Origin: Dicyema japonicum
Lineage: Eukaryota > Animalia > Dicyemida
DNA length: 40,712 nucleotides
Reading direction: 5' to 3'
Assembly: GCA_011109175.1 (NCBI GenBank)
Contig: RDEW01000081.1
Coordinates: 108,019-148,730 of the forward strand
This document shows positions 25,670 through 37,670 of this stretch, piece by piece. The position numbers and the translations under genes were made by a program. Under the pieces are notes generated by a model. It worked only from the letters and a program-made list of their open reading frames with translations, searched no databases and had not been told where the DNA came from. How positions within the stretch are numbered: position 1 is the first letter of the stretch; every line of letters begins with the position of its first letter.

Positions 25670-26140
25670 CGTTATATTAACTAAGGTCCCGTTTGTGCTA
25701 CACGTTTCAAAATCTGCTTCACTAGGCGTCTCCGTCGCCTTCTGCTTTGCGCATCTGTCCTTAGATCTTCTAGGTCTTCTGCAGATTTAAGTTTTCTTCC
25801 AATTCCATTAAGATCGTTAAGAGCCACTGGTAGAGTGACTCTAAGCCTTCCTCTGAACGATGGTCTGTTCTCATTGTTAAAGTAATTGTCCATTATTATA
25901 TTTGCAGAAGCGTTTATGTCCATTCTAAGCACGTGCCCAAACAGTCTCCATCTTGATTAATAATGTCGATGCTTATTGGCCTCGATTGTGCCACAGAGTA
26001 TAATTTCTTATTTTAAATCTTCTTGGGCTAACCTAAGCCCACTAAATTGAGTAATTGTTTTCGATGAAATATATCCATTTTTTGTGACCCCCCATGTACC
26101 CGAGTTGTACATAAGCACCGGCTTTATATATGAGTTGTAT
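25670..26140 (-). mobile_element. RTE-like LINE 3' fragment
   Basis: YNSYIKPVLMYNSGTWG, RWRLFGHVLRMD and FRGRLRVTLP...KLKSAEDLEDLR. Confidence 0.85.
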
Positions 26141-26189
26141 AGTCTTTTTCTTTGATTTCATTTTATTAGTTTTCGTAGACTCCATATCT

Positions 26190-28235
26190 TCTCTATTTTC
26201 TGATACATAGCAGAACTTTACATCATGTCCTCACTATCATTAAGTATTTGGCGGGTGAATGACAGGATCTGCGTAATACAGATCCGTCTAAACAACCAAT
26301 GTTCCCCTAAAAATACAATTATAAATGTATATGCACCACACTGTGGAAGAGTGGCGAAAAACCTGGATGAATTCTACTCAGCATTATCAAAGACGTATAA
26401 TGAATATGAGTCGTCCTCACTTATATTCATTGCTGGCAATCTAAATGCGAAAATTGAAAAAAAAGAACTCAGAAGATACCTTCATGGGAAGACACGGACG
26501 TGGGAAAAGAAACTTGCCTGGGACCATACTTGGCCATTTCTGCACGGCAAACAAACTGTTCTTGTGCAACACCGCATTCTCTCATCGTGCATGCCACATA
26601 ACCACTTGGATGGCGAACGAAGAAACCCAGAAGGAAGACTAGTCCCTATATACGACCAAATTGATTATATGCCTGATCAATGACAAACGCTCTCTTATAA
26701 ACGCACGCTCATACGAAGGTTCAACAACTGTCAGCGATCACAGAATGGTTATTGTCACCTTCAGCCTGGCGAAACATGGTATCAAACATAAGTAACATAA
26801 CAACTTTACAAACATAATATGAGAATACAAGAAATGGATACGGAAAACTGATCTCTCATCCAGATACAATAAAAAATTACAAAAAATACATCTGCTCTTA
26901 TGTGAAGGACCTAACAGTAGGAATTTCGTAGGATCGCACACAGTATATAATAAACGAAGCAGCGAGCCAGTACCTCGGCACGCGGGAGATGGCCAGTAAA
27001 GGTCGGACGATACATACAGAACTAGGAGTTATCAAAGGAGTTAAAAGAAATCATACAAAAACTAAACGAAAAAGACAAGAGAAAAGCCTTCAGGGGCAGA
27101 GGGACCAAATCCGTAGAAAAATCAGGAGATTGAACAAGACACTCCACCAAGAAGAACTGCTTTGCAAAATCAATCAATTATCCAAACTAAAGACAATTCA
27201 CAAATGTATATGACCGCTCATTTACTACGCACACAAACCGGAAGGAACGGATAATCATCAAAGACAAAAATGGCAGGACATTACTGAGTACTGAAGAGCA
27301 AGCGGAGGTAATTGCAACACATTTTGAGAAACTTTTCAATGTGACTACAGCAATCCCCCATTCAAAGGAAAGCCTAGACCCTTGAAAGAACCAACTACAG
27401 TTTTGGAAGTAAAAACAGCATGTCAAAAACTAAAAAATAACAGAAGCCCTGGACCAGATAGGATAAACCAAGAATTACTAAAATACGGCCTGACCCCTTT
27501 TTAAAAAAATCGCTACACTACTAAATGAAATGTTTTCAACTAACTCAACCTTGCCCCTGGGAACAGGATTACTAATACAAAAACCCAATAAACCCAAAGG
27601 ACCGGTTGAAAACTTACGACCTATTATATTATCAAATTCTCTATGGAAAGTCTCAGCTAACATTGTATTGGAACAAATAAAATGACCCGCCAATGACTAT
27701 CTACTCGAAAGTCAAAGTGGGTTCAGAGAAGGAAAATCAACAGCTGATGCAGTCTGGAGTCACAGATGGAGATGTGCAACACATTAAAAATATTGCAATG
27801 CCACCACATTCTGGGAATAGATCTATCAAAAGGAGTCTAAGAATGATCCAAATCCTTCTATCTAACACAGAACTCCTTGTGAGAGTTGGAAAAATCTACT
27901 CTAGAAAATTTGAAACAAACACACTCCCTCTCTCCGCTTCTATTCACAATATACTTGGAGGCCGCTATGAAAGAACTGAGACCATTATACCAAGGAAAAA
28001 TAGAAGTTTTTTATGCTGATGATGTCGACCTAATCTCTGAAGACAAAGAACTCCTGGAACATGTACTAGAAAAAGCACCAGATATACTTGGGAAATGGTT
28101 TTTCACCGTGAACAGAGAAAAAACAGAAGGGACAGAAATAAGACGAATGAATAACTCACTCGAAGAGAAATGGAGACACACAAAGAAACTTACATTCTCC
28201 CATGAGGTTGATATTGTGGCATCACCCACAAGTTG
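26190..28235 (+). mobile_element. RTE-like LINE ORF (APE endonuclease + RT), multiply deleted and frameshifted
   Basis: APE motifs INVYAPH, AGNLNAK, QIDY and SDHRMV; RT motifs SPGPDRI, LRPIILSN, QSGFREGKST, LSPLLFTIYLE and FYADDVDLI. Confidence 0.92.
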
Positions 28236-28239
28236 AATT

Positions 28240-29640
28240 CTCGGTTTATGTTCACATCACTGTCAACCGGGCCCTAAGTAGTCTCCCTGCTGAATTACGA
28301 TTTACACTAAAGCTGACTCCGTACGATAGCTGTACAAGTTGGCCAATTTCTGGCACTCCTATCGAGCAAATCTCTATAATACAGTCACTCTTAACGATTT
28401 GAAGGCATTCAATATATCAATCTTCAGAACTAGGCATTTGGTTGTTGTTCCCGCTGAAGTAACTCATCGTTGCGTGCACTGCTACCTCGCATCCACTGCC
28501 CACACCCATGCCAAGTTGAGTGAGTTCTTCGCCAATCCTAGGAGATAATTTAGCAGGACTCTTCGGAAGTGTGTACCGATCGCAATTGGGCGCACTCAAC
28601 CACATCCTTTTCGAAATGCCAATAGACGTCTTCAAAAATTATCTCCAGCAAATGTAGGAGAGAATCCATTAATTATTCTCTTGAAGTGGTTGGTGATAGA
28701 CATAATCAAAGCTCGGCCCACCTCAGCAGTAGCTTCTGAATTAAATCCCTTACATGGCTTGGTCGCAGTCCATCCAAACCTCCATTCGATAATCAAGCAG
28801 GGTTGTTTCTTCTCATTAACTCCAGAACTGCTGGACATGGTTTCACGGGTGTTTGGTCAAAGCACGAATGTCGTTTTCCATCAGTTTTCGGTTTAGGGTG
28901 CAAAGCTCAGTAATCATAACTAAGAGATCTGGTCATTGATACTGATGACTTAACGATTAGTGGCATGAGACATTCCGCAGCAGGAATACGAACGATTTTG
29001 GATATCCTTAGTTTAATCCGTCTAACTTTCCGACTCTCCGACAAAAGCCCTTTGTCAGTAGAAGATTGCATATGAAAATTATAGAGACAAATCATGGCTA
29101 AAAAAGTGAAAAAAGTCAGATAAGGTCAACACATTCCTATCATTTTGAAATGAATAACTACACTAAATTATATAATTGTTCCATAAACCGCAATTCAATT
29201 CCAATGTTATGGAAACATGCATACATCCAATCGACAAAGTTCATGATTGTCAAAATCTTGGAAAAGCTTCTTCTGTAAAAACAAATTCTTCCTAATAATC
29301 AGTTCCAGCATGAATTTAAAAACGGTCTATCAATCACGAGTCATCTTGGTAATTTCATTTGCTCTGGCTTCCCCCAAATTCCAGACATCAGAAGACCGTG
29401 TCATGTTCCATTGAAATTGCAAAGCTCTCTGCTCCGTTCCTAGAAGAATCTTTTTGAAAAATTTTTCGGACGGACATTCCTGGGAATTTAAAACTCTGAC
29501 TGGCTAACTTTTTTGCAACGGGAGAGGACGAGTCTGCCTTGGGGCTTTCGATCAGTCTCCCGGGTATTTTCTAGTGTAGCCCATAGTTCACTACTATTCC
29601 CACTCCTTGCAAGGAAAAGGTTGAACTAATTTTTCCTGAG
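28240..29640 (-). mobile_element. CRE-like (R2-group) non-LTR element, 5' region and RT, heavily deleted
   Basis: LLAFRKGCG*VRPIAIGTHFRR, VLKIDILNAF and QQGDYLGP match CRE-type LIALxKKDGGIRPIAVGxTxRR / KIDFxNAFN / QQGDPLGP. Confidence 0.7.
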
Positions 29641-29716: not shown

Positions 29717-30082
29717 TTAATTAGAAAGCCAGTTATTAATATGATTGATAATGCCTTCTATTTGTTCTCCACTAAATCTATATTCAATCATTTCTATTAT
29801 GTTGTATAACTCAACTTCACTTCGAGGCATTAAATTGACTATCATCATAATTTCTGCTTTTGTTAACTCAAATTGATTGAGAGATTCAACAAATGACAAC
29901 AATTTATCAACGTGAATGGTATTGGGAGTTAGTTTCTTGACGTAATCCTTAGTGTTGTGAAGAATAGCTGATATATTCTTTTCTTCTTTAAGTATTTTCT
30001 TCTCAATACGGGAGATATTCTCCAAAATGGCCATAACTTCAGCGTTGGTTACAAAATTATCTTGTACTTTAATAATTTTCAT
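29717..30082 (-). CDS. CRCP: RNA polymerase III subunit RPC9/C17 (CGRP-RCP), intronless, 121 aa
   Basis: MKIIKVQDNFVTNAEV...LTKAEIMMIVNLMPRSEVELYNIIE...RFSGEQIE matches the Rpb4/RPC9 pattern (SNYEV; LTKAEKLQLLNHRP; EERLTEEQIE). The open frame is intact. Confidence 0.85.
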   Translation of the reverse strand: MKIIKVQDNFVTNAEVMAILENISRIEKKILKEEKNISAILHNTKDYVKKLTPNTIHVDKLLSFVESLNQFELTKAEIMMIVNLMPRSEVELYNIIEMIEYRFSGEQIEGIINHINNWLSN

Positions 30083-30148
30083 AACAACAATCAATCACGT
30101 ATTTTAAATAATAATTAAAAAATAAATTTATTACTTAGTAACTATAAT
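30083..30148. promoter_or_regulatory. 66-bp divergent (bidirectional) intergenic region between CRCP and IQCK
   Basis: Head-to-head ATGs at 30082 and 30149; contains TCACGT. Confidence 0.6.
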
Positions 30149-31013
30149 ATGTCTATATTAACAACTGTTCAGCCTGATTTATGGAATGAAATTTTTTATG
30201 GTCAATGGTTGTCTTACTTTAGAAATTGAGTCAGAGAAGCCTTGTGGAATAGGTGATATTTCACCAACTAAAATAATCAATTTTGACCAAAGTCGACACA
30301 GTCCAGTCTTTTACGGGTATTATTTCTCTCCAATAAACATCGATACACCCCTTTATAAATTCTCTTCTGCTGTCGGTCACCCAGCCATGTTGGGGTATTT
30401 TGTGGAAACAATCGAAAAGGAAGTTGAAATTCAACCCCAAAAGCCTCATATAAAAATTGTTTCACTTAGAATTGACTAAAGGCGACCATCTCACTTATTT
30501 AAAGTATTACGTCTACCCTACGTTGACAACTGCTTTAGAAGAGCTCCTTACATTAGCTAAAAAAGAAGGTTGTTTCAATGGAACAGTTTTTTGTATAAAA
30601 ATTTTAGCAAAGCAGACGAAGTAAACGTTTGATGAGGGCCACAGACATACTTGTGACTAACCTGTACAAGTTTATATTATTATTTACGACAGTAACAATA
30701 AAATACACAAAGATAGACCTCATTATGACTTTGAGGATATTCCATTTGTAAAATGCTTTCTGACAAAAAAGTAATTAATATTTGTGACAAAGTCCGCGAA
30801 AAGCAATACCAATGTCGGAATTATGGAGTGATGAGGAAGCAGCCATTATAATTCAATCACATTGGCGGGATATAAGGTTAACGTAAATAATAATTGCATA
30901 CTCGTAAAAACCCAGAAATAAATGAATTAATAATATGGCAGAGACAGTGGAGAGAGGAGAAATGCATTAACAAAGAAGTTGCTAATTTATGGAATGATGT
31001 TGTTAAAATATAA
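30149..31013 (+). CDS. IQCK: IQ-domain protein K-like, 6 micro-introns
   Basis: Spliced product DLWNEIF...KNCDHLTYLKYYVYPTLTTALEELLTLAKKEGCF...DFEDIPFV...PRKAIPMSELWSDEEAAIIIQSHWRGYKTRKNPEINELIIWQRQWREEK matches IQCK. It needs one extra A at ~30454, one extra G at ~30868, and an AT acceptor at 30898-30899. Confidence 0.82.
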
Positions 31014-31062
31014 ACTAATAAAATCAAACAAATTTAATTCAAAGGAAAGAGGGAGAGACAAA

Positions 31063-32005
31063 TTAATCACTATTTTTAATAGGAGAACCACCATTAGTTA
31101 TATCACTGGTCTTGTCTTGTCTCATTGAATCTCTATTAGACCCACTACGAGATCTGCTAATACTTGCCCTTTCCTTCGATGATTTACGACTCACTGAACG
31201 AGATGATGAACTACGAGAACGACGACGTTTGTTTCTCGATCTAATTGGTGTCCTACTACGAGAATATGAAGATCCAGAACGATCTCTAGAATCTCTATTG
31301 TCATCCTCCTTCACTCTAATATAAGCAGTGTCCCCCTAAAATCACAACACCACAAACCTTATGAGAACGAAACTTTGAGTCATTTAATTTTTTAACAGCA
31401 TGTGACATATCCTCCTTCCTAATAAAAGAGACGACACCTTTTCCTCCTCCAAATACATCAGCATAGGCAATATCCCCACATTCTCGGAAGTGGTCTTTCA
31501 AATCTTGCCAACTTCCAGTCGGTGGTAGTCCTACAAGTGGTAAAACAAAGATACCAGACACAAGAACAGAGTTCTTAGATCTTCTTGGTACAAAACCTGA
31601 TGACCTCTCAGAATATTTGTTGGTATATGATCCCTTAGGGAACTCCACCCGAATCCTGTAGCCGTCGAAGTAGTATCCATTCCTCCGTCGAACAGCATCA
31701 TCCGCAGCACTAGAATTGTCTCCGTAAAAGCAAAGTAAATATATTCCTCCAAGTAATCCTCACAGAAATGTCAGAATCCTGAAAGGACGTGAGTTTATAG
31801 CATAGCCAACAGCATGACAAAAACGCACTTACTGTCTATGGTCCATCTCTACAAAGGCGAATGGAAGACCACGCCCATTTCGAGGCTGCTTGATATCAAC
31901 GCTCACCACTCTTCCGTATTTTCTGAAAATATCCTCAATCTCGTATTCCTTAATGCTGGAGGGAAGATTTCCAACGTACAAACGGCAATCATTTCGGTAA
32001 GACAT
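31063..32005 (-). CDS. SRSF1: SR splicing factor SRSF1/SRSF9 (ASF/SF2)-like, 3 introns (123, 24, 22 nt)
   Basis: RRM1 LYVGNLP...FAFVE...DDAV...[14 protein letters not shown]2 with the diagnostic SWQDLKDH and [14 protein letters not shown]|GDTAYIRV, and a C-terminal RS domain. Intron positions match animal SRSF1. Confidence 0.93.
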
Positions 32006-32481
32006 AACAACAACGAAAGAGTTTTATATCACGTGATTAATTAAAATTTTATTTAATATATAATTTTTTTATTTATTATATTTTTAATTTACCATGTCTT
32101 TTATGAAAATCTAATAGTTGAAGTATTATATAATAGTTACACAATATAATTTATAGATTCAAAGACATGTGGAAGCGTCCATCATTATCTGCTCGAAGCC
32201 TGAGGACGGTCCGCCTCTTACAAGGTCGAGAGGTCGGGACTAATAACTAACAATATAATTTAATCGATAGTCATTTATTGATTGAATTAATTTGATAATC
32301 TTATAGTTTTATTCTTAGGTTGTCGTCGTTATTCAGATCGTCTCAATGATCCAAAGGGTCACAAGGATCACATGAGACTGGATGGCTTCGAGAGCGTATT
32401 TCGATAACTATCGTTAGAAGAAAACAGCATGGCCATTCAAGTTCCCTAACTTTTAATTTTTAAAAAAAAGTTAGCAATGGT

Positions 32482-33330
32482 CATATAGCGGCCACCTGAC
32501 TGCGTGGCTATATTCTCTCGTCGCTAATGGACCTGCAAACATCCTTGTCAAGAGGATTCTACACTCTCTTCCTGAATTCTCTATTGACGCCTGGAGCCGT
32601 ACTTATCAGCTTTCTCTACTTTCCACGTTCTCTCGGCGTGCCTGGACGATGCAGAATTCTTTTGAAAATCTGCTGTGTCATATTGTCAAAATCGTTTTCC
32701 TTCCAAGAGCGGTGCCGGGTTCAACACCATTCCCAATGCTGTTTTGAGTACCTTCTGGATGAATGAATGGGTCCGTATTGGGATCTCACTACGACTGGGA
32801 TTAAAAGTCTGTGTTCCACATCCGTGCCGATGTGGAGACCAGGTCGACTGTTTTGGCCTACAAACAGATCTCTCAGACACATGTGTTTGAACGAAGTCGT
32901 TAGGCGAGCTTTGGACGCCGCCGGACACACCTCCATGCTAGAAAACAGTCGGTCTTTCCAGGCATGACAGGAAACGACCAGATGGGATTACCATCTTCCT
33001 TTTTTGAAACCTGGAAACTTCTTGTCTGGGACGTCACCTGCACCGACACGTTTGCCCCTTTGCAATTTACTCTAGAGTGCCTCTGGTGCTTGTTCTTCCG
33101 CTAGAAAGCCGAGAGGTTGAAACGAGCAAATTATACGGTCCTACCAATGATTTTTTGTTCGTGCCACTTACCGTTAGAACGTTTGGTTCCCTTGCGCATG
33201 CAACGCTGAAATTCTTGAGTCATCTAGGGAATCGAATTTCTAAACGATCAGGAGACTCCCGGGAACTCAGGTGATTATTTGAGCGAATCTCGCTCTCCAC
33301 CCTGAGAGGGAATAGCCACGCAGTCAGGGA
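32482..33330 (+). mobile_element. CRE-like element 3' part (zinc-knuckle region + restriction-like endonuclease), flanked by inverted copies of its own 3' end
   Basis: VRIGISLRLG...HPCRCG, LNEVVRRAL, KRPDGIT, WDVTCTDTFAP, FVPLTVRTFG and RISLSTLRGNSHAV. A perfect 17-bp inverted repeat spans 32495-32511 / 33312-33328. Confidence 0.85.
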
Positions 33331-33389
33331 CGGTATTTATTTTATTAACCCCGGATACACCAAGAAAGAAGTTAAAGTAAACAACTAGT

Positions 33390-33830
33390 TAAGTGTAGTG
33401 GACCGTCTTGAATGTTTCCACAGAGCTCAGCTAAACTCTGATCAACTGGTCTATGAAGATCCCTAATGCAAACCTTTATACTAAATGCGAATCCGGCGTG
33501 CTGTCAGATGATATTTTCAAATCAAGATGGAGCTTCTTTGGCCACGTGTTATGTCTAAATGACCAGGTCACCAAATGTCGCAATGGAAAACTACTTCGCA
33601 TACACAGGAGTCGGATTCCGTGGAAGACCAAAAACAAAACTCCGACTATCTTGAATGAAGACCTATGGGCGGTTGGTGTGAGACTAACTTCGGCGGACGA
33701 CCTGGATGACCTAAGAGAACTAGCGAGCAACAGAGGATCATGGTCGTGGTTGACGGAGAGGATGATTAGGAATACGGCACAAGGGAGACTTAATTAACTT
33801 TATGTTTTCTCGGGAGAGCTTTTAATAATA
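33390..33830 (+). mobile_element. RTE-like LINE 3' end with UTR
   Basis: KIPNANLYTKC...SRWSFFGHVL...EDLWAVGVRLTSADDLDDLRELASNRGSW; same family as 6935-7280. Confidence 0.88.
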
Positions 33831-33942
33831 ATCAAGTTATTACATTATTTAAAGCTTACACTTTGACCTAAAAATAGGATTTGGATCAACCTTGAAATTT
33901 TCTTAAGAAAACAATTTATGACAAAAAAAGAAAGATTTAGAT

Positions 33943-34160
33943 CAGCGGTTCTTAACCTTTTTAAGCCAACGCCCCTTTTTGATGCAATTTTGGAGGATCA
34001 AAATTTCAACGCCCCTTAAGATTTAATTTTTTTCAATTGCGGCAATATTTTGTATGATACTAATAGGCCTTTTTCAAGCATTAATCATAAGACGATTTTC
34101 ATAATTATATTTCAGATTAGAAAAATAATTAACATCAAGTTTCTCAGGATGAAAAAACTT
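33943..34160 (+). mobile_element. hAT (Charlie/MER5-like) left end or MITE remnant
   Basis: CAGCGGTTCTTAACCTTTTT preceded by ATTTAGAT (NT(C/T)TAGAN-like target). Confidence 0.5.
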
Positions 34161-34168
34161 AAGATGAT

Positions 34169-36330
34169 TTAACATTCCATCCGTAGGACGTGTCCAAACA
34201 ATCTCCATCGGGCCTCCACCACATCCCAAGTCACAGGTCGCGTTGAGCACTTTCGGTACAGTGCCTCATTGTTGATCCGTGTCGGCCATTGTACCTCGCA
34301 TAGTATTCGTAATTGCCTTCGGTGGAAGGAGTTAAAATTTTTGGTTTCTGAGACCGAGATCCCCCAGCAGGAAAAGTTATATAGCAAGACCAGCTTCACG
34401 AAAGCATTATAGAGGCGCAAACGAAGCGCGATCGTATACCACAAACAGCAAAGGGGAAAGGGAGTCCCCCTGGGGGGTATCCACAGTCGTCGAAAAATTT
34501 CTGAACGACGTACTCTCAACTCGTACCGTCAGTTCTGTATTCGACAATAAAACTTCTATCATCCTGACAGAATCCCTATTAAGGAATCCCCGCAAAACAT
34601 CAAAGAGATTTCCTCGGTGAACTGTGTCGAAGGCTCTCGACATGTCGATATCCAAAATTGTAGTCGCACTCTCAAATCTTTGGTAAGTGGCACAACGCCA
34701 CTTATGCCCCAGACCACATCAGTAGTAGATCTGCCTGTCCTGAATCCACTGTGGCACGATGACAGGAATTCATTCACAGGCTTTTGCACAAGATCCAGCA
34801 CCACCAGAGCAAGGACCTTTCTTAGCGTATTTAGTAGGATGACTGAGTGCAGGTTTTCCACAGGGCCCGCCCTTTTATTCGGTTTTTGAATCGGCACCAG
34901 AATTCCTTTGCCCAACGGAAGAAAGTCGTTAGTTGCAAACATTTGGTTTAATACTTTGCCCACGATTTACACCTGGGTTTTGGGGTTGTACTTATGTAAC
35001 TCAGACGAGCGATTACACTTCAGTCTCTCTATTGCTTTCATAACTTCTCCCACCGTGATTTTATTTACAAGATTTCCTGCATTACCAGTGATTAGGTCCA
35101 CCTTTTCCCCGTCAACTTCAAAGAGTTTTTCAAAATGAGCAGCAATAAGTTCGGCTTGTTCCGTAGCGTCAAAAATCACATTCCCTGTTATCCTGAATTT
35201 TTAGTATGCCCTTTTGGTTCCTCCTCTTAAGCAGGCGCATTGCCAAAAACATCTGCCCACAATCCTTTAGATTCTCCACTTCCTTTAGCCTGGCATCCAA
35301 AACGTTCACTTTAATTTTCTGATTTTTCTCTGTATTCTAGTACGTTCCAACTGTAAAAAGCATTTCCTGTCTGTGTTCGTCATGTTTTCTAGCGATAGTC
35401 GAAGATCCTTCTGTTTTGCAGCTAGTGCGGGAACATCAGGGTGGCCCTGCTTGTACCTCGTACGTTGTGCGGCCGCCTCCCAATGTGTTTGTCTGCAACC
35501 ATGTGAATTCTTTCCATTGTATGCGTCCAAGTGACTCCCGGTGGAAGGCCTGATCTATTGCTTGTAGATGATGTTCCATAGATGATCAATAAATATTTCG
35601 ATGAAGTGTGAAAAACATAATCTCTCGACTAGGTATCCTCTCCGTATGACCTGAGATGGCTTTGTTCCTGATGTGCGTGCATAGCGACTTGTAATATCAA
35701 ACAGGGCCACGACGATCTTGTGGTCGCTTTCCACGACGGCCCCTCCGTATACCTCGAGTCCCGTAATAGTGTTCTATTATTATGTCGGCAAAAAATGTAA
35801 TCAATCTTATTGTAAATCATCACATGGCCCCCAGATTCATTTCTTCTGCAGCTCGTCCAGGTAGTCTTATGTCGTGCAACATGCGTAAACGCAGTGTTAC
35901 ACAGGAATAGATCACTGCCCGACAGAAATTTATCACCACAGCCCCTGGCAGGTTCCTGATCCTTCTTCCGTGTCTTCCGATAGTCGACTCATGCTCCCGA
36001 CATACTCATGCTTTAGCATTTAGTCCCGGCAATGAAGACTAGAAAATACGATTCCAATTCGGCATTTGTCCTCGACAGCTGCACGTAGAAAGCATCAAGT
36101 TCGTCCGAATCTTTGGCGACTCGTCCACTGTGAGGTGCATAAACATTTATAATTGAGAAGGGACCTCGAAGTGCGTTTGACCCCAACCAGTATTTGCAGT
36201 ATGCTGATTCTGTCGCTAACACTCCAACAACGACATATTCCACGAACAAGTTTCTTGTGCACGGCAAACCCCTGTCTATAATGTCTTGATGACGATGGTA
36301 TAACAGGTTTCTTTCCCACTCCCTCTTACA
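34169..36330 (-). mobile_element. RTE-like LINE (APE + RT + C-terminus) with internal deletions
   Basis: INVYAPHSGR, NKIDYIFC, SGFRTGRSTTD, DIDMSRAFDTVHR, PQGDSLSPLLFVVY, LYNAFVK and EARWRLFGHVLRM. Confidence 0.92.
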
Positions 36331-36529
36331 TTGAAAGATGTTATTTTAAGCTCCTCCAAGCCCTTTAAGTACGTTTCAGACATTTGTGCAATAGAGATGT
36401 CGTCACCACCTCAACCAATACTTTTTTTGTATTTAAATCAATGCAGAGGGAAAGAGTCGTCTCGCGTACCCTGTATCGTGCGGATGGTTCTAAAACCTCG
36501 GAACCGGCTGAAATAGCGAGCATCTTTGC

Positions 36530-37670
36530 AGGTAGCTTTGGAGCAGTCACTGCAGTTCGACCGGACAAATTCGTCGAAAGGTCTGCTCGCCAAAGTATTG
36601 AGGACGTCATCTTTACGGAGAGGCGCAAGCGAAGCCACTTTCGGGGGAATCTAATATGATGTATAACTGAGGAGGAGGTCCGGTCCGCAATTAGAAAATT
36701 GAAGAACAACGCACTGGGCCAGGACAAGATCCCCATGGCCCTTTTCAAGAAAGGGCCTGCAAGTCTTCTAGCGACCTTTGTAAGGTTGTACAAAGGTAGC
36801 TTCAGGTTGGGTTACGTTCCTAGGCATTGGAAGGAAGCAGAACTGGTTTTTGTAAAAAAAAAACCAGGAAATCCTCCTGAAGACCCTAGTAGCTACCGGC
36901 CTATAAGCCTGTTGTCTGCCGTTGCTAAAATCTTAGAGAGAGTGATATACCAGAGATTAACCCAGGAATGCATAATAAGAGACACCCTCTCGGACCTTCA
37001 GATGGGATTCCGTGAGGGGCGTTCCTGTGGGGACTGCTGTCTATGCGGACGACATAGTACTCTGGGATCACTCGTGGAAACCAGATGTGGCGTGTCGGAG
37101 GATTCAACTCGCTGTCGATGAAATCATACGCTGGTGTGGGAGCAGAGGACTCAGGCTGAGGCCCGAGAAATGCAGGTTATTAGTTTTTGGCCCCCCTAAG
37201 CGGTCTAATAATTTAATGCCTTGAGTGAACATCTATGGGGTACCTATAGAGGTCACTACCTTGGAGTGACGAGCTACCTTGGAGTGACGTTCAACTCCAA
37301 GTGTAGTTTCCAGGAGCACACCGCCCTCGTTAAGAGGCGGGCTGTGCAAAGACTAGGAGCGTTGAGGGCTTTTCAGCTGAGCCGCGATGCCTGGGCCAAA
37401 GTGTTCAACGCCATGGTGCTGCCTATGCTCACTTATGGTGCGCACTCCTGGTATCGCAGTGAGGAACGCGAAAAGTGCCTCACGAACCTTAGGAAGGTTC
37501 GGCGGCGGGCAATACGGTATTCTCTAGGAATGTCTTATAGAGCGCCGCTGCCGGAAAGAGGATAGCCTGATTTTAAGGACCCGGAGGAAGTTATCAAAAA
37601 GATTGAAATTAGACTAAAGAAGGAGGCACGAAGAAGACAACAGAGATGGCACGAAAACGCTAGGGGATGA
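36530..37670 (+). mobile_element. I/Jockey-like LINE RT to 3' end, GC-richer family, RT core partly deleted
   Basis: ITEEEVRSAIRKLK, SYRPISLLSAVAKILER, QMGFREGRS joined directly to AVYADDI, YLGVTF and LPMLTYGAHSW. There is an 18-bp tandem duplication at ~37255-37290. Confidence 0.92.

Follow-up and report, generated by a model that had tools for sequence, protein, structure and literature searches.

Why should an SR protein gene retain a long first intron in an animal known for introns of only a few tens of nucleotides? The shortest introns known among animals are those of dicyemids and of myxobolid myxozoans (PMC13644364). The mean intron length in Dicyema japonicum is 38 bp (PMC6736024), and the median in Dicyema sp. 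is 27 bp, with approximately two thirds of the introns falling below 30 bp (PMC6543705). Moreover, across the D. japonicum genome the splice-site logos show no more than GTa and AG (PMC13644364). Self-limitation of SR proteins by unproductive splicing is among the most widespread post-transcriptional circuits, yet it requires intron space. We analysed a stretch of 40,712 nucleotides from D. japonicum (contig RDEW01000081.1, positions 108,019 to 148,730, hereafter called the window), in which a sequence-only reading had proposed an autoregulatory splicing switch within a 123-nt intron of an SRSF1-type gene. Self-regulation of an SR gene would in itself be no surprise to a specialist. Rather, the locus bears on the question of why some introns resist extreme shrinkage.

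The SRSF1-type gene is located on the minus strand, where its coding sequence (32005-31063) comprises four exons and three introns of 123, 24 and 22 nt. The product of 257 codons plus a stop codon has the domain order RRM1, linker, pseudo-RRM and RS tail. The parts of the gene are as follows.

31833 to 32005, minus strand: exon 1, 173 nt, starting at its ATG (32005) and ending after CA, in phase 2
31710 to 31832, minus strand: intron 1, 123 nt, GTAAGT...CTAG, 38% GC
31555 to 31709, minus strand: exon 2, 155 nt
31531 to 31554, minus strand: intron 2, a micro-intron of 24 nt, a multiple of three without an in-frame stop
31358 to 31530, minus strand: exon 3, 173 nt, encoding the pseudo-RRM with SWQDLKD
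31336 to 31357, minus strand: intron 3, a micro-intron of 22 nt
31063 to 31335, minus strand: coding part of exon 4, encoding the RS tail, with the stop codon TAA at 31065-31063

The naming of this gene as SRSF1 in the sequence-only reading is borne out by several lines of evidence. Pfam RRM_1 matches both exon 1 (1.4e-12, the N-terminal canonical RRM) and exon 3 (1.6e-11). In translation, the N-terminal RRM contains the RNP-like sequences LYVGNL and PFAFVEM, exon 3 carries GSWQDLKDH, which includes the intact SWQDLKD signature helix of SRSF1-type pseudo-RRMs, and exon 4 is rich in RS and SR dipeptides, as befits a C-terminal Arg/Ser-rich domain. Protein searches, which were run exon by exon, identified SRSF1/1A/1B of arthropods, nemerteans and others as the best named relatives, at about 50-55% identity. 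A word search with the longest stop-free frame as the query (147 aa, candidates of 81-257 aa) and an exhaustive representative search both led to SRSF1 orthologues at approximately 54% identity and to nothing else, and the short matches seen at 60-75% identity are RRM2 fragments of other organisms. Exact look-up of the exon-1 ORF and of one neighbouring ORF in protein records returned no identical entry, and the protein collections searched held no dicyemid orthologue or transcript-derived protein of this gene. Likewise, a scan of metagenome contigs with exon 3 recovered distant SRSF1 genes (best match 75% identity) and no dicyemid. Because the two RRM_1 matches, the SWQDLKD helix, the Arg/Ser tail and the nearest named relatives all point in the same direction, the gene is identified by its sequence as encoding an SR protein of the SRSF1/9 subfamily, with every defining feature that was examined present.

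As a separate observation on this gene model, retention of intron 2 (31531-31554, minus strand) would add eight residues (IFVLPLVG) to the inter-RRM linker without truncating the protein, unlike introns 1 and 3, each of which would bring in a stop codon or a frameshift if retained.

The productive splice of intron 1 can be read from the conserved protein sequence on either side of it. Joining exon 1 to exon 2 after removal of 123 nt yields VEMDHR-H-AADDAV, which corresponds to conserved RRM1 and is collinear with FAFVEF-xxxR-DAEDAV. For comparison, SRSF1-type loci were gathered from metagenomes and other assemblies; 37 of these are readable at the region, and 16 carry an intron there, representing 13 distinct introns. 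An insertion at this point is found in none of the 37 readable loci, and intron 1 includes no other internal AG or GT that would preserve the frame. The collinear and insertion-free join across these 37 relatives indicates that all 123 nt are removed in the productive splice. Thus, the coordinates proposed for the intron at the outset (31832-31710, 123 nt, with a GTAAGT donor and a length about five times the norm) are all confirmed.

The length of intron 1 is exceptional in its surroundings. The 30 curated micro-introns of the window range from 21 to 30 nt with a median of 23, making intron 1 5.3 times as long as the local norm, and none of the 30 has the GTAAGT donor that is present in intron 1. 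In the Nav-channel gene of the window, removal of micro-introns alone leaves breaks of less than 50 nt at most, and a gene at 13.7-15.2 kb falls into a few large open frames, with its junctions placed in part. Intron 1 is the sole long intron among the approximately 35 that were reconstructed in the window. The description of it as the only long intron holds for these introns and fails for the genome, where the published mean of 38 bp exceeds the medians of 23-27 bp and so points to a number of longer introns (PMC6736024, PMC6543705).

Comparison with other organisms places this length in a different light. In each of the 16 other SRSF1-type loci that are still split at this point, the intron interrupts the same codon in the same phase, namely after the second base of the codon preceding D-A-[ED]-D-A, and its length elsewhere varies from 56 to 883 nt. 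The shared codon and phase argue that intron 1 was kept and not inserted, and by this comparison its position is ancient. Judged against its homologues, 123 nt is an ordinary length, and the oddity is that intron 1 did not shrink while introns 2 and 3 did. ORFs of other organisms also meet introns directly after RSHE and, in one case, directly before GLPPTG. From these readings, all three intron positions of the dicyemid SRSF1 gene look ancestral.

The signals of intron 1 are of the classical animal type (GTAAGT; cctttCAG), and a second set of splice-site-like elements is located in its interior. The relevant features, in the direction of transcription, are as follows.

31827 to 31832, minus strand: donor GTAAGT of intron 1, with an in-frame TAA at 31831-31829; the exon-1 ORF ends here, in DHRQ and a stop
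31779 to 31793, minus strand: internal 3' splice-site-like element, with CTCAC (branch-like A at 31790), a pyrimidine tract and a CAG ending at 31779
31745 to 31787, minus strand: predicted hairpin of 43 nt, in which the internal pyrimidine tract and AG pair with the GGA-rich strand
31764 to 31778, minus strand: candidate micro-exon of 15 nt, in frame and without a stop, which would put QILTFL in place of H
31758 to 31763, minus strand: internal donor-like GTGAGG, containing an in-frame TGA at 31762-31760
31745 to 31759, minus strand: GGA-rich stretch of 15 nt with three GGA triplets, at a distance of 20-35 nt past the internal acceptor
31710 to 31728, minus strand: real 3' end of intron 1, with TTTAC (branch-like A at 31725), a weak tract (6/14) and a TAG ending at 31710

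Position-weight matrices derived from the micro-introns were uninformative, as they mostly reflect AT-richness and assign low scores even to the real sites of intron 1, and classical criteria were used instead. By these criteria, the internal acceptor (AG at 31780-31779; 11 pyrimidines among 14 positions, CAG) appears better than the real one (6 of 14, TAG). Indeed, the internal tract equals the best of the 30 micro-introns, whereas that of the real acceptor is the worst seen. Reading of the sequence also upholds the reading frames proposed for these elements. Splicing to the internal acceptor would lengthen the message by 69 nt, translated as Q-I-L-T-F-L up to the TGA at 31762-31760, and the GTGAGG beginning at 31763 would define an in-frame micro-exon of 15 nt flanked by two intron halves of 54 nt each. 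The predicted GGA-rich motifs are likewise present in the part that would be retained, given that intron 1 contains five GGA triplets (2.07 expected) and four of these are found at 31779-31745. Each donor holds an in-frame stop (TAA in GTAAGT, TGA in GTGAGG), such that read-through would end translation at once. In silico, more than 200 nt separate both the TGA at 31762-31760 and the TAA at 31831-31829 from the downstream junctions of introns 2 and 3, as compared with a criterion of more than approximately 50 nt.

The chance of encountering such an arrangement was estimated with tests that were framed after the sequence had been seen and whose thresholds were fitted to the observed sites, and all of the following values are consequently nominal. 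When only an internal pyrimidine-rich YAG is required, 15-23% of controls qualify; 0.5-0.6% do so with a GTRAG donor within 60 nt, and 0.12-0.16% with a GTRAG donor and an open in-frame micro-exon as well. On the same nominal terms, the presence of five GGA triplets amounts to a mild enrichment (P=0.008 against shuffles, P=0.045 against random 123-mers of the window). Among the 13 homologous introns from elsewhere (about 4.7 kb in total), the combination of acceptor and donor is found once, or approximately 0.03 times per 123 nt, which is about the shuffle expectation. Because this single occurrence is at chance level, the unit is not common to this intron position, and a poison exon shared across organisms at the position was rejected.

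The predicted hairpin encloses both the candidate micro-exon and the internal donor. Its predicted folding energy is -14.8 kcal/mol (z -2.1), with 7 of 200 shuffles scoring as good, and it is retained in the MFE and centroid structures of a 203-nt context as well as when the intron is folded alone. The fold of intron 1 as a whole is unremarkable (z -0.77).

The space available downstream of the gene is also relevant. An ATTAAA at 31038 is located 27 nt past the SRSF1 stop codon, and a convergent gene follows close behind. The position of this signal suggests that the 3' UTR is very short, at about 30-60 nt. With the signal and the neighbouring gene so near, there would be no room for 3'-UTR introns of the human type.

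These features can be combined into a model wherein the decoy in intron 1 provides splicing-level control of SRSF1 dosage, a reading that we advance tentatively and to which we give slightly less than an even chance. Its steps (decoy use, NMD, SRSF1 binding and feedback) are what we infer from the gene structure and elements described above. To make the functional mRNA, intron 1 would be removed whole, from the strong GTAAGT donor to the weak distal acceptor and past the stronger-looking proximal one. Use of the decoy acceptor (31779) would lead instead into the in-frame TGA at 31762-31760, and simple retention of intron 1 would have the same outcome by way of the in-frame TAA at 31831-31829. 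Because both stops are far upstream of two later exon junctions, both messages would be unproductive and would probably be degraded by NMD. The GGA-rich stretch just past the decoy acceptor is a candidate binding site for SRSF1's own pseudo-RRM. The human SRSF1 pseudo-RRM binds GGA, and what is seen in the dicyemid protein is conservation of the SWQDLKD motif of this domain. The hairpin would mask the decoy acceptor while SRSF1 protein is scarce, and binding of the pseudo-RRM to the GGA strand would both free this acceptor and act as its enhancer.

Counted in favour of dosage control are an RRM1 splice that works only with removal of the 123 nt, the ancient position, the classical signals, the rare unit, the GGA motifs, the hairpin, the intact SWQDLKD helix and the short 3' UTR. 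Counted against it are the post hoc nature of the statistics, the whole-intron z of -0.77 and the lack of deep conservation of the unit, which is absent from the homologous introns elsewhere save for the one of 13 at chance level. In addition, the known autoregulation of SRSF1 sits in the 3' UTR and not in intron 1 (PMC9262138). Overall, autoregulation is a plausible reading of intron 1, and membership of the gene in the AS-NMD autoregulatory class is not established. For D. japonicum, stranded RNA-seq data and an assembled transcriptome have been publicly released (PRJNA496385; TSA GHAB00000000; PMC6736024).

The proposed circuit resembles several known systems and differs from each of them. 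Negative autoregulation of human SRSF1 concerns the orthologous gene, and excess protein has been proposed to drive its own pre-mRNA to unproductive forms (Sun et al. 2010, as cited in PMC9262138; Ding et al. 2022, PMC9262138). However, the regulated introns of the human gene are in the 3' UTR and its coding introns are constitutive (PMC9262138), whereas the dicyemid candidate switch is located in coding intron 1 within RRM1. SRSF5/B52 and its fungal orthologues offer a likeness of another kind, in that an in-frame stop enters the message of an SR gene when one intron that the gene has kept is retained or alternatively spliced (PMC4379411). Nearly all SR genes are subject to unproductive splicing, whose position within the gene shifts in the course of evolution, and fungi with short introns achieve it by simply retaining an intron that carries a stop (Lareau & Brenner 2015, PMC4379411). 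In these respects, the circuit proposed for intron 1 would match the known feedback logic of SR genes. The SRSF5/B52 case differs in the SR paralogue and in the intron position, and NMD dependence was demonstrated there with a Upf1 mutant of N. crassa (PMC4379411), whereas in the dicyemid case NMD is a predicted outcome.

The poison cassette exons of SR and SR-like genes such as SRSF3, SRSF7 and TRA2B are similar in that an exon-like intronic unit is combined with a stop and with self-binding motifs, the latter being candidates in the dicyemid gene (PMC11791180; Lareau 2007, as cited in PMC4379411). Those exons span tens to hundreds of nucleotides and are ultraconserved, whereas the dicyemid unit of 15 nt is open and would lead to a stop only if the internal donor were skipped. 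Among plants, the SF2/ASF-like genes SR30 and SR34, which belong to the SRSF1-type subfamily, reportedly use alternative 3' sites in their longest intron to produce a premature stop. These genes are from another kingdom, the intron is another one (in the second RRM region), and its conservation is said to be documented across plants. Yeast DBP2 and human DDX5 provide an example of a conserved autoregulatory intron that is a rare long one kept in the gene of an RNA-binding protein in an intron-poor or short-intron genome, although both the protein family and the mechanism are different.

A broader proposal would be that the few long introns left amid the collapse to approximately 23 nt are working splicing-based dosage sensors. 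For SRSF1, the feedback would have shifted from its mammalian location in the 3' UTR to coding intron 1, with a decoy 3' splice site that is masked by a hairpin and opened by the protein's own GGA-binding pseudo-RRM. We regard this fuller version as rather unlikely. If the circuit itself does survive in this dicyemid, the least sequence from which it can be built would be about 120 nt containing a single decoy acceptor and a handful of GGA motifs, and the escape of particular introns from shrinkage would have a functional explanation. Such a circuit would be notable for its place, in coding intron 1 and not in the 3' UTR, and for its setting in a micro-intron genome.

Intron 1 might instead be a plain constitutive intron, one of the minority that stayed long, with its internal acceptor, donor, GGA triplets and hairpin due to chance and of no regulatory use. 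We consider this the main rival, only a little less probable than dosage control. Longer introns are not rare in the genome, to judge from the mean of 38 bp against medians of 23-27 bp (PMC6736024, PMC6543705), 123 nt is ordinary for the homologous intron, and the fold of the whole intron is not unusual. In addition, a pyrimidine-rich YAG alone is present in 15-23% of controls under statistics that are post hoc, and the unit of acceptor and donor is not conserved at this position elsewhere. What such an explanation must accommodate is the rarity of the combined unit (in 0.5% of shuffles and, in homologous introns, about 0.03 times per 123 nt) and a decoy acceptor of apparently greater strength than the real one, hazardous to constitutive splicing unless masked or tolerated. 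It must also accept as coincidence that the unit resides in an SR gene, a class almost always self-regulating by splicing (PMC4379411). The same elements could alternatively define a real micro-exon of 15 nt between two introns of 54 nt, always or sometimes included, that substitutes QILTFL for H in the RRM1 loop preceding helix 2. Although the exon is in frame and open, and both halves are formally complete introns (each with a donor and an AG that is preceded by a branch-like yUnAy at a distance of 11-15 nt), the absence of any insertion at this point in 37 SRSF1-type sequences makes this quite improbable. Moreover, a hydrophobic insert would be placed in a loop at the surface, introns of 54 nt would remain twice as long as the local norm, and an exon of 15 nt would be hard to define with a donor as weak as this one (4/9 match to the U1 consensus).

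The remaining explanations attribute the length of intron 1 to something other than splicing. It is improbable, in our judgement, that the intron was kept long by some other functional content, such as a small RNA or a transcription element near the promoter of a compact gene. Being the first intron, 173 nt past the ATG, and containing CACGTC at 31791-31786, one base off CACGTG, intron 1 is compatible with such a role, but the exact CACGTG is absent from it. No Rfam family was detected in the intron (best E=3.3, for a bacterial sRNA model, far below the gathering score), and a snoRNA or other known RNA family was rejected on this result. No C/D or H/ACA box arrangement was seen on reading intron 1, and the z of -0.77 for its fold also speaks against a structured RNA. 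Finally, a transposable-element remnant or other recent insertion into a once-tiny intron was considered, given that LINE/RT remnants flank the gene and that about 49% of the genome consists of repeats (PMC6736024). However, contigs from three DNA runs cross intron 1 unbroken and colinear, with flat single-copy depth and no joints in the gene, and no second copy of the intron beyond matches of 17 nt or less is present in the 40-kb window. The GC content of 38% is similar to that of the exons (40-46%). Because of this depth, the missing second copy and the exon-like GC content, intron 1 is not a recent repeat remnant. The transposable-element origin, which had been named in the sequence-only reading as an outcome that would speak against a switch, was thus rejected, and we hold any recent insertion to be extremely improbable.

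The same read contigs provide information on the quality of the window around the gene. Within the SRSF1 gene, the contigs of the three DNA runs show zero differences from the window. The neighbouring gene on the plus strand, which extends from 30186 to about 31013 and includes an IQ motif at 30812-30883, is covered at full depth by all three runs, which differ from the window by T>A at 30194 and by single-base insertions following 30451 (A), 30866 (G) and 30877 (T). These differences look like assembly errors or strain differences, and because of them the frame of the IQ-motif neighbour may be falsely broken in the window. Upstream of SRSF1, the depth of the read contigs from one DNA run rises at 32358-32450 from about 400 to more than 33,000, and loose ends and alternative joints are numerous there. 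The region marks the border of a repeat of very high copy number, some 350 nt from the start codon.

Several additional features of the locus were noted. An exact CACGTG palindrome is located at 32030-32035, 25 nt upstream of the SRSF1 ATG, and the CACGTC of intron 1 (31791-31786), with its one mismatch, shares bases with CTCAC, the branch-like sequence preceding the internal acceptor. Adjoining the convergent neighbour of SRSF1, an intronless ORF of 125 residues (29717-30094, minus strand) matches Pfam RNA_pol_Rpb4 at 2.7e-21, which identifies it by sequence as a compact gene for an Rpb4-family polymerase subunit. Decayed ORFs of non-LTR retrotransposons, resembling endonucleases and reverse transcriptases, are present on both strands at 26000-29000 and 32500-37500. 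These remnants flank a small gene island that consists of the Rpb4-like, IQ-motif and SRSF1 genes.
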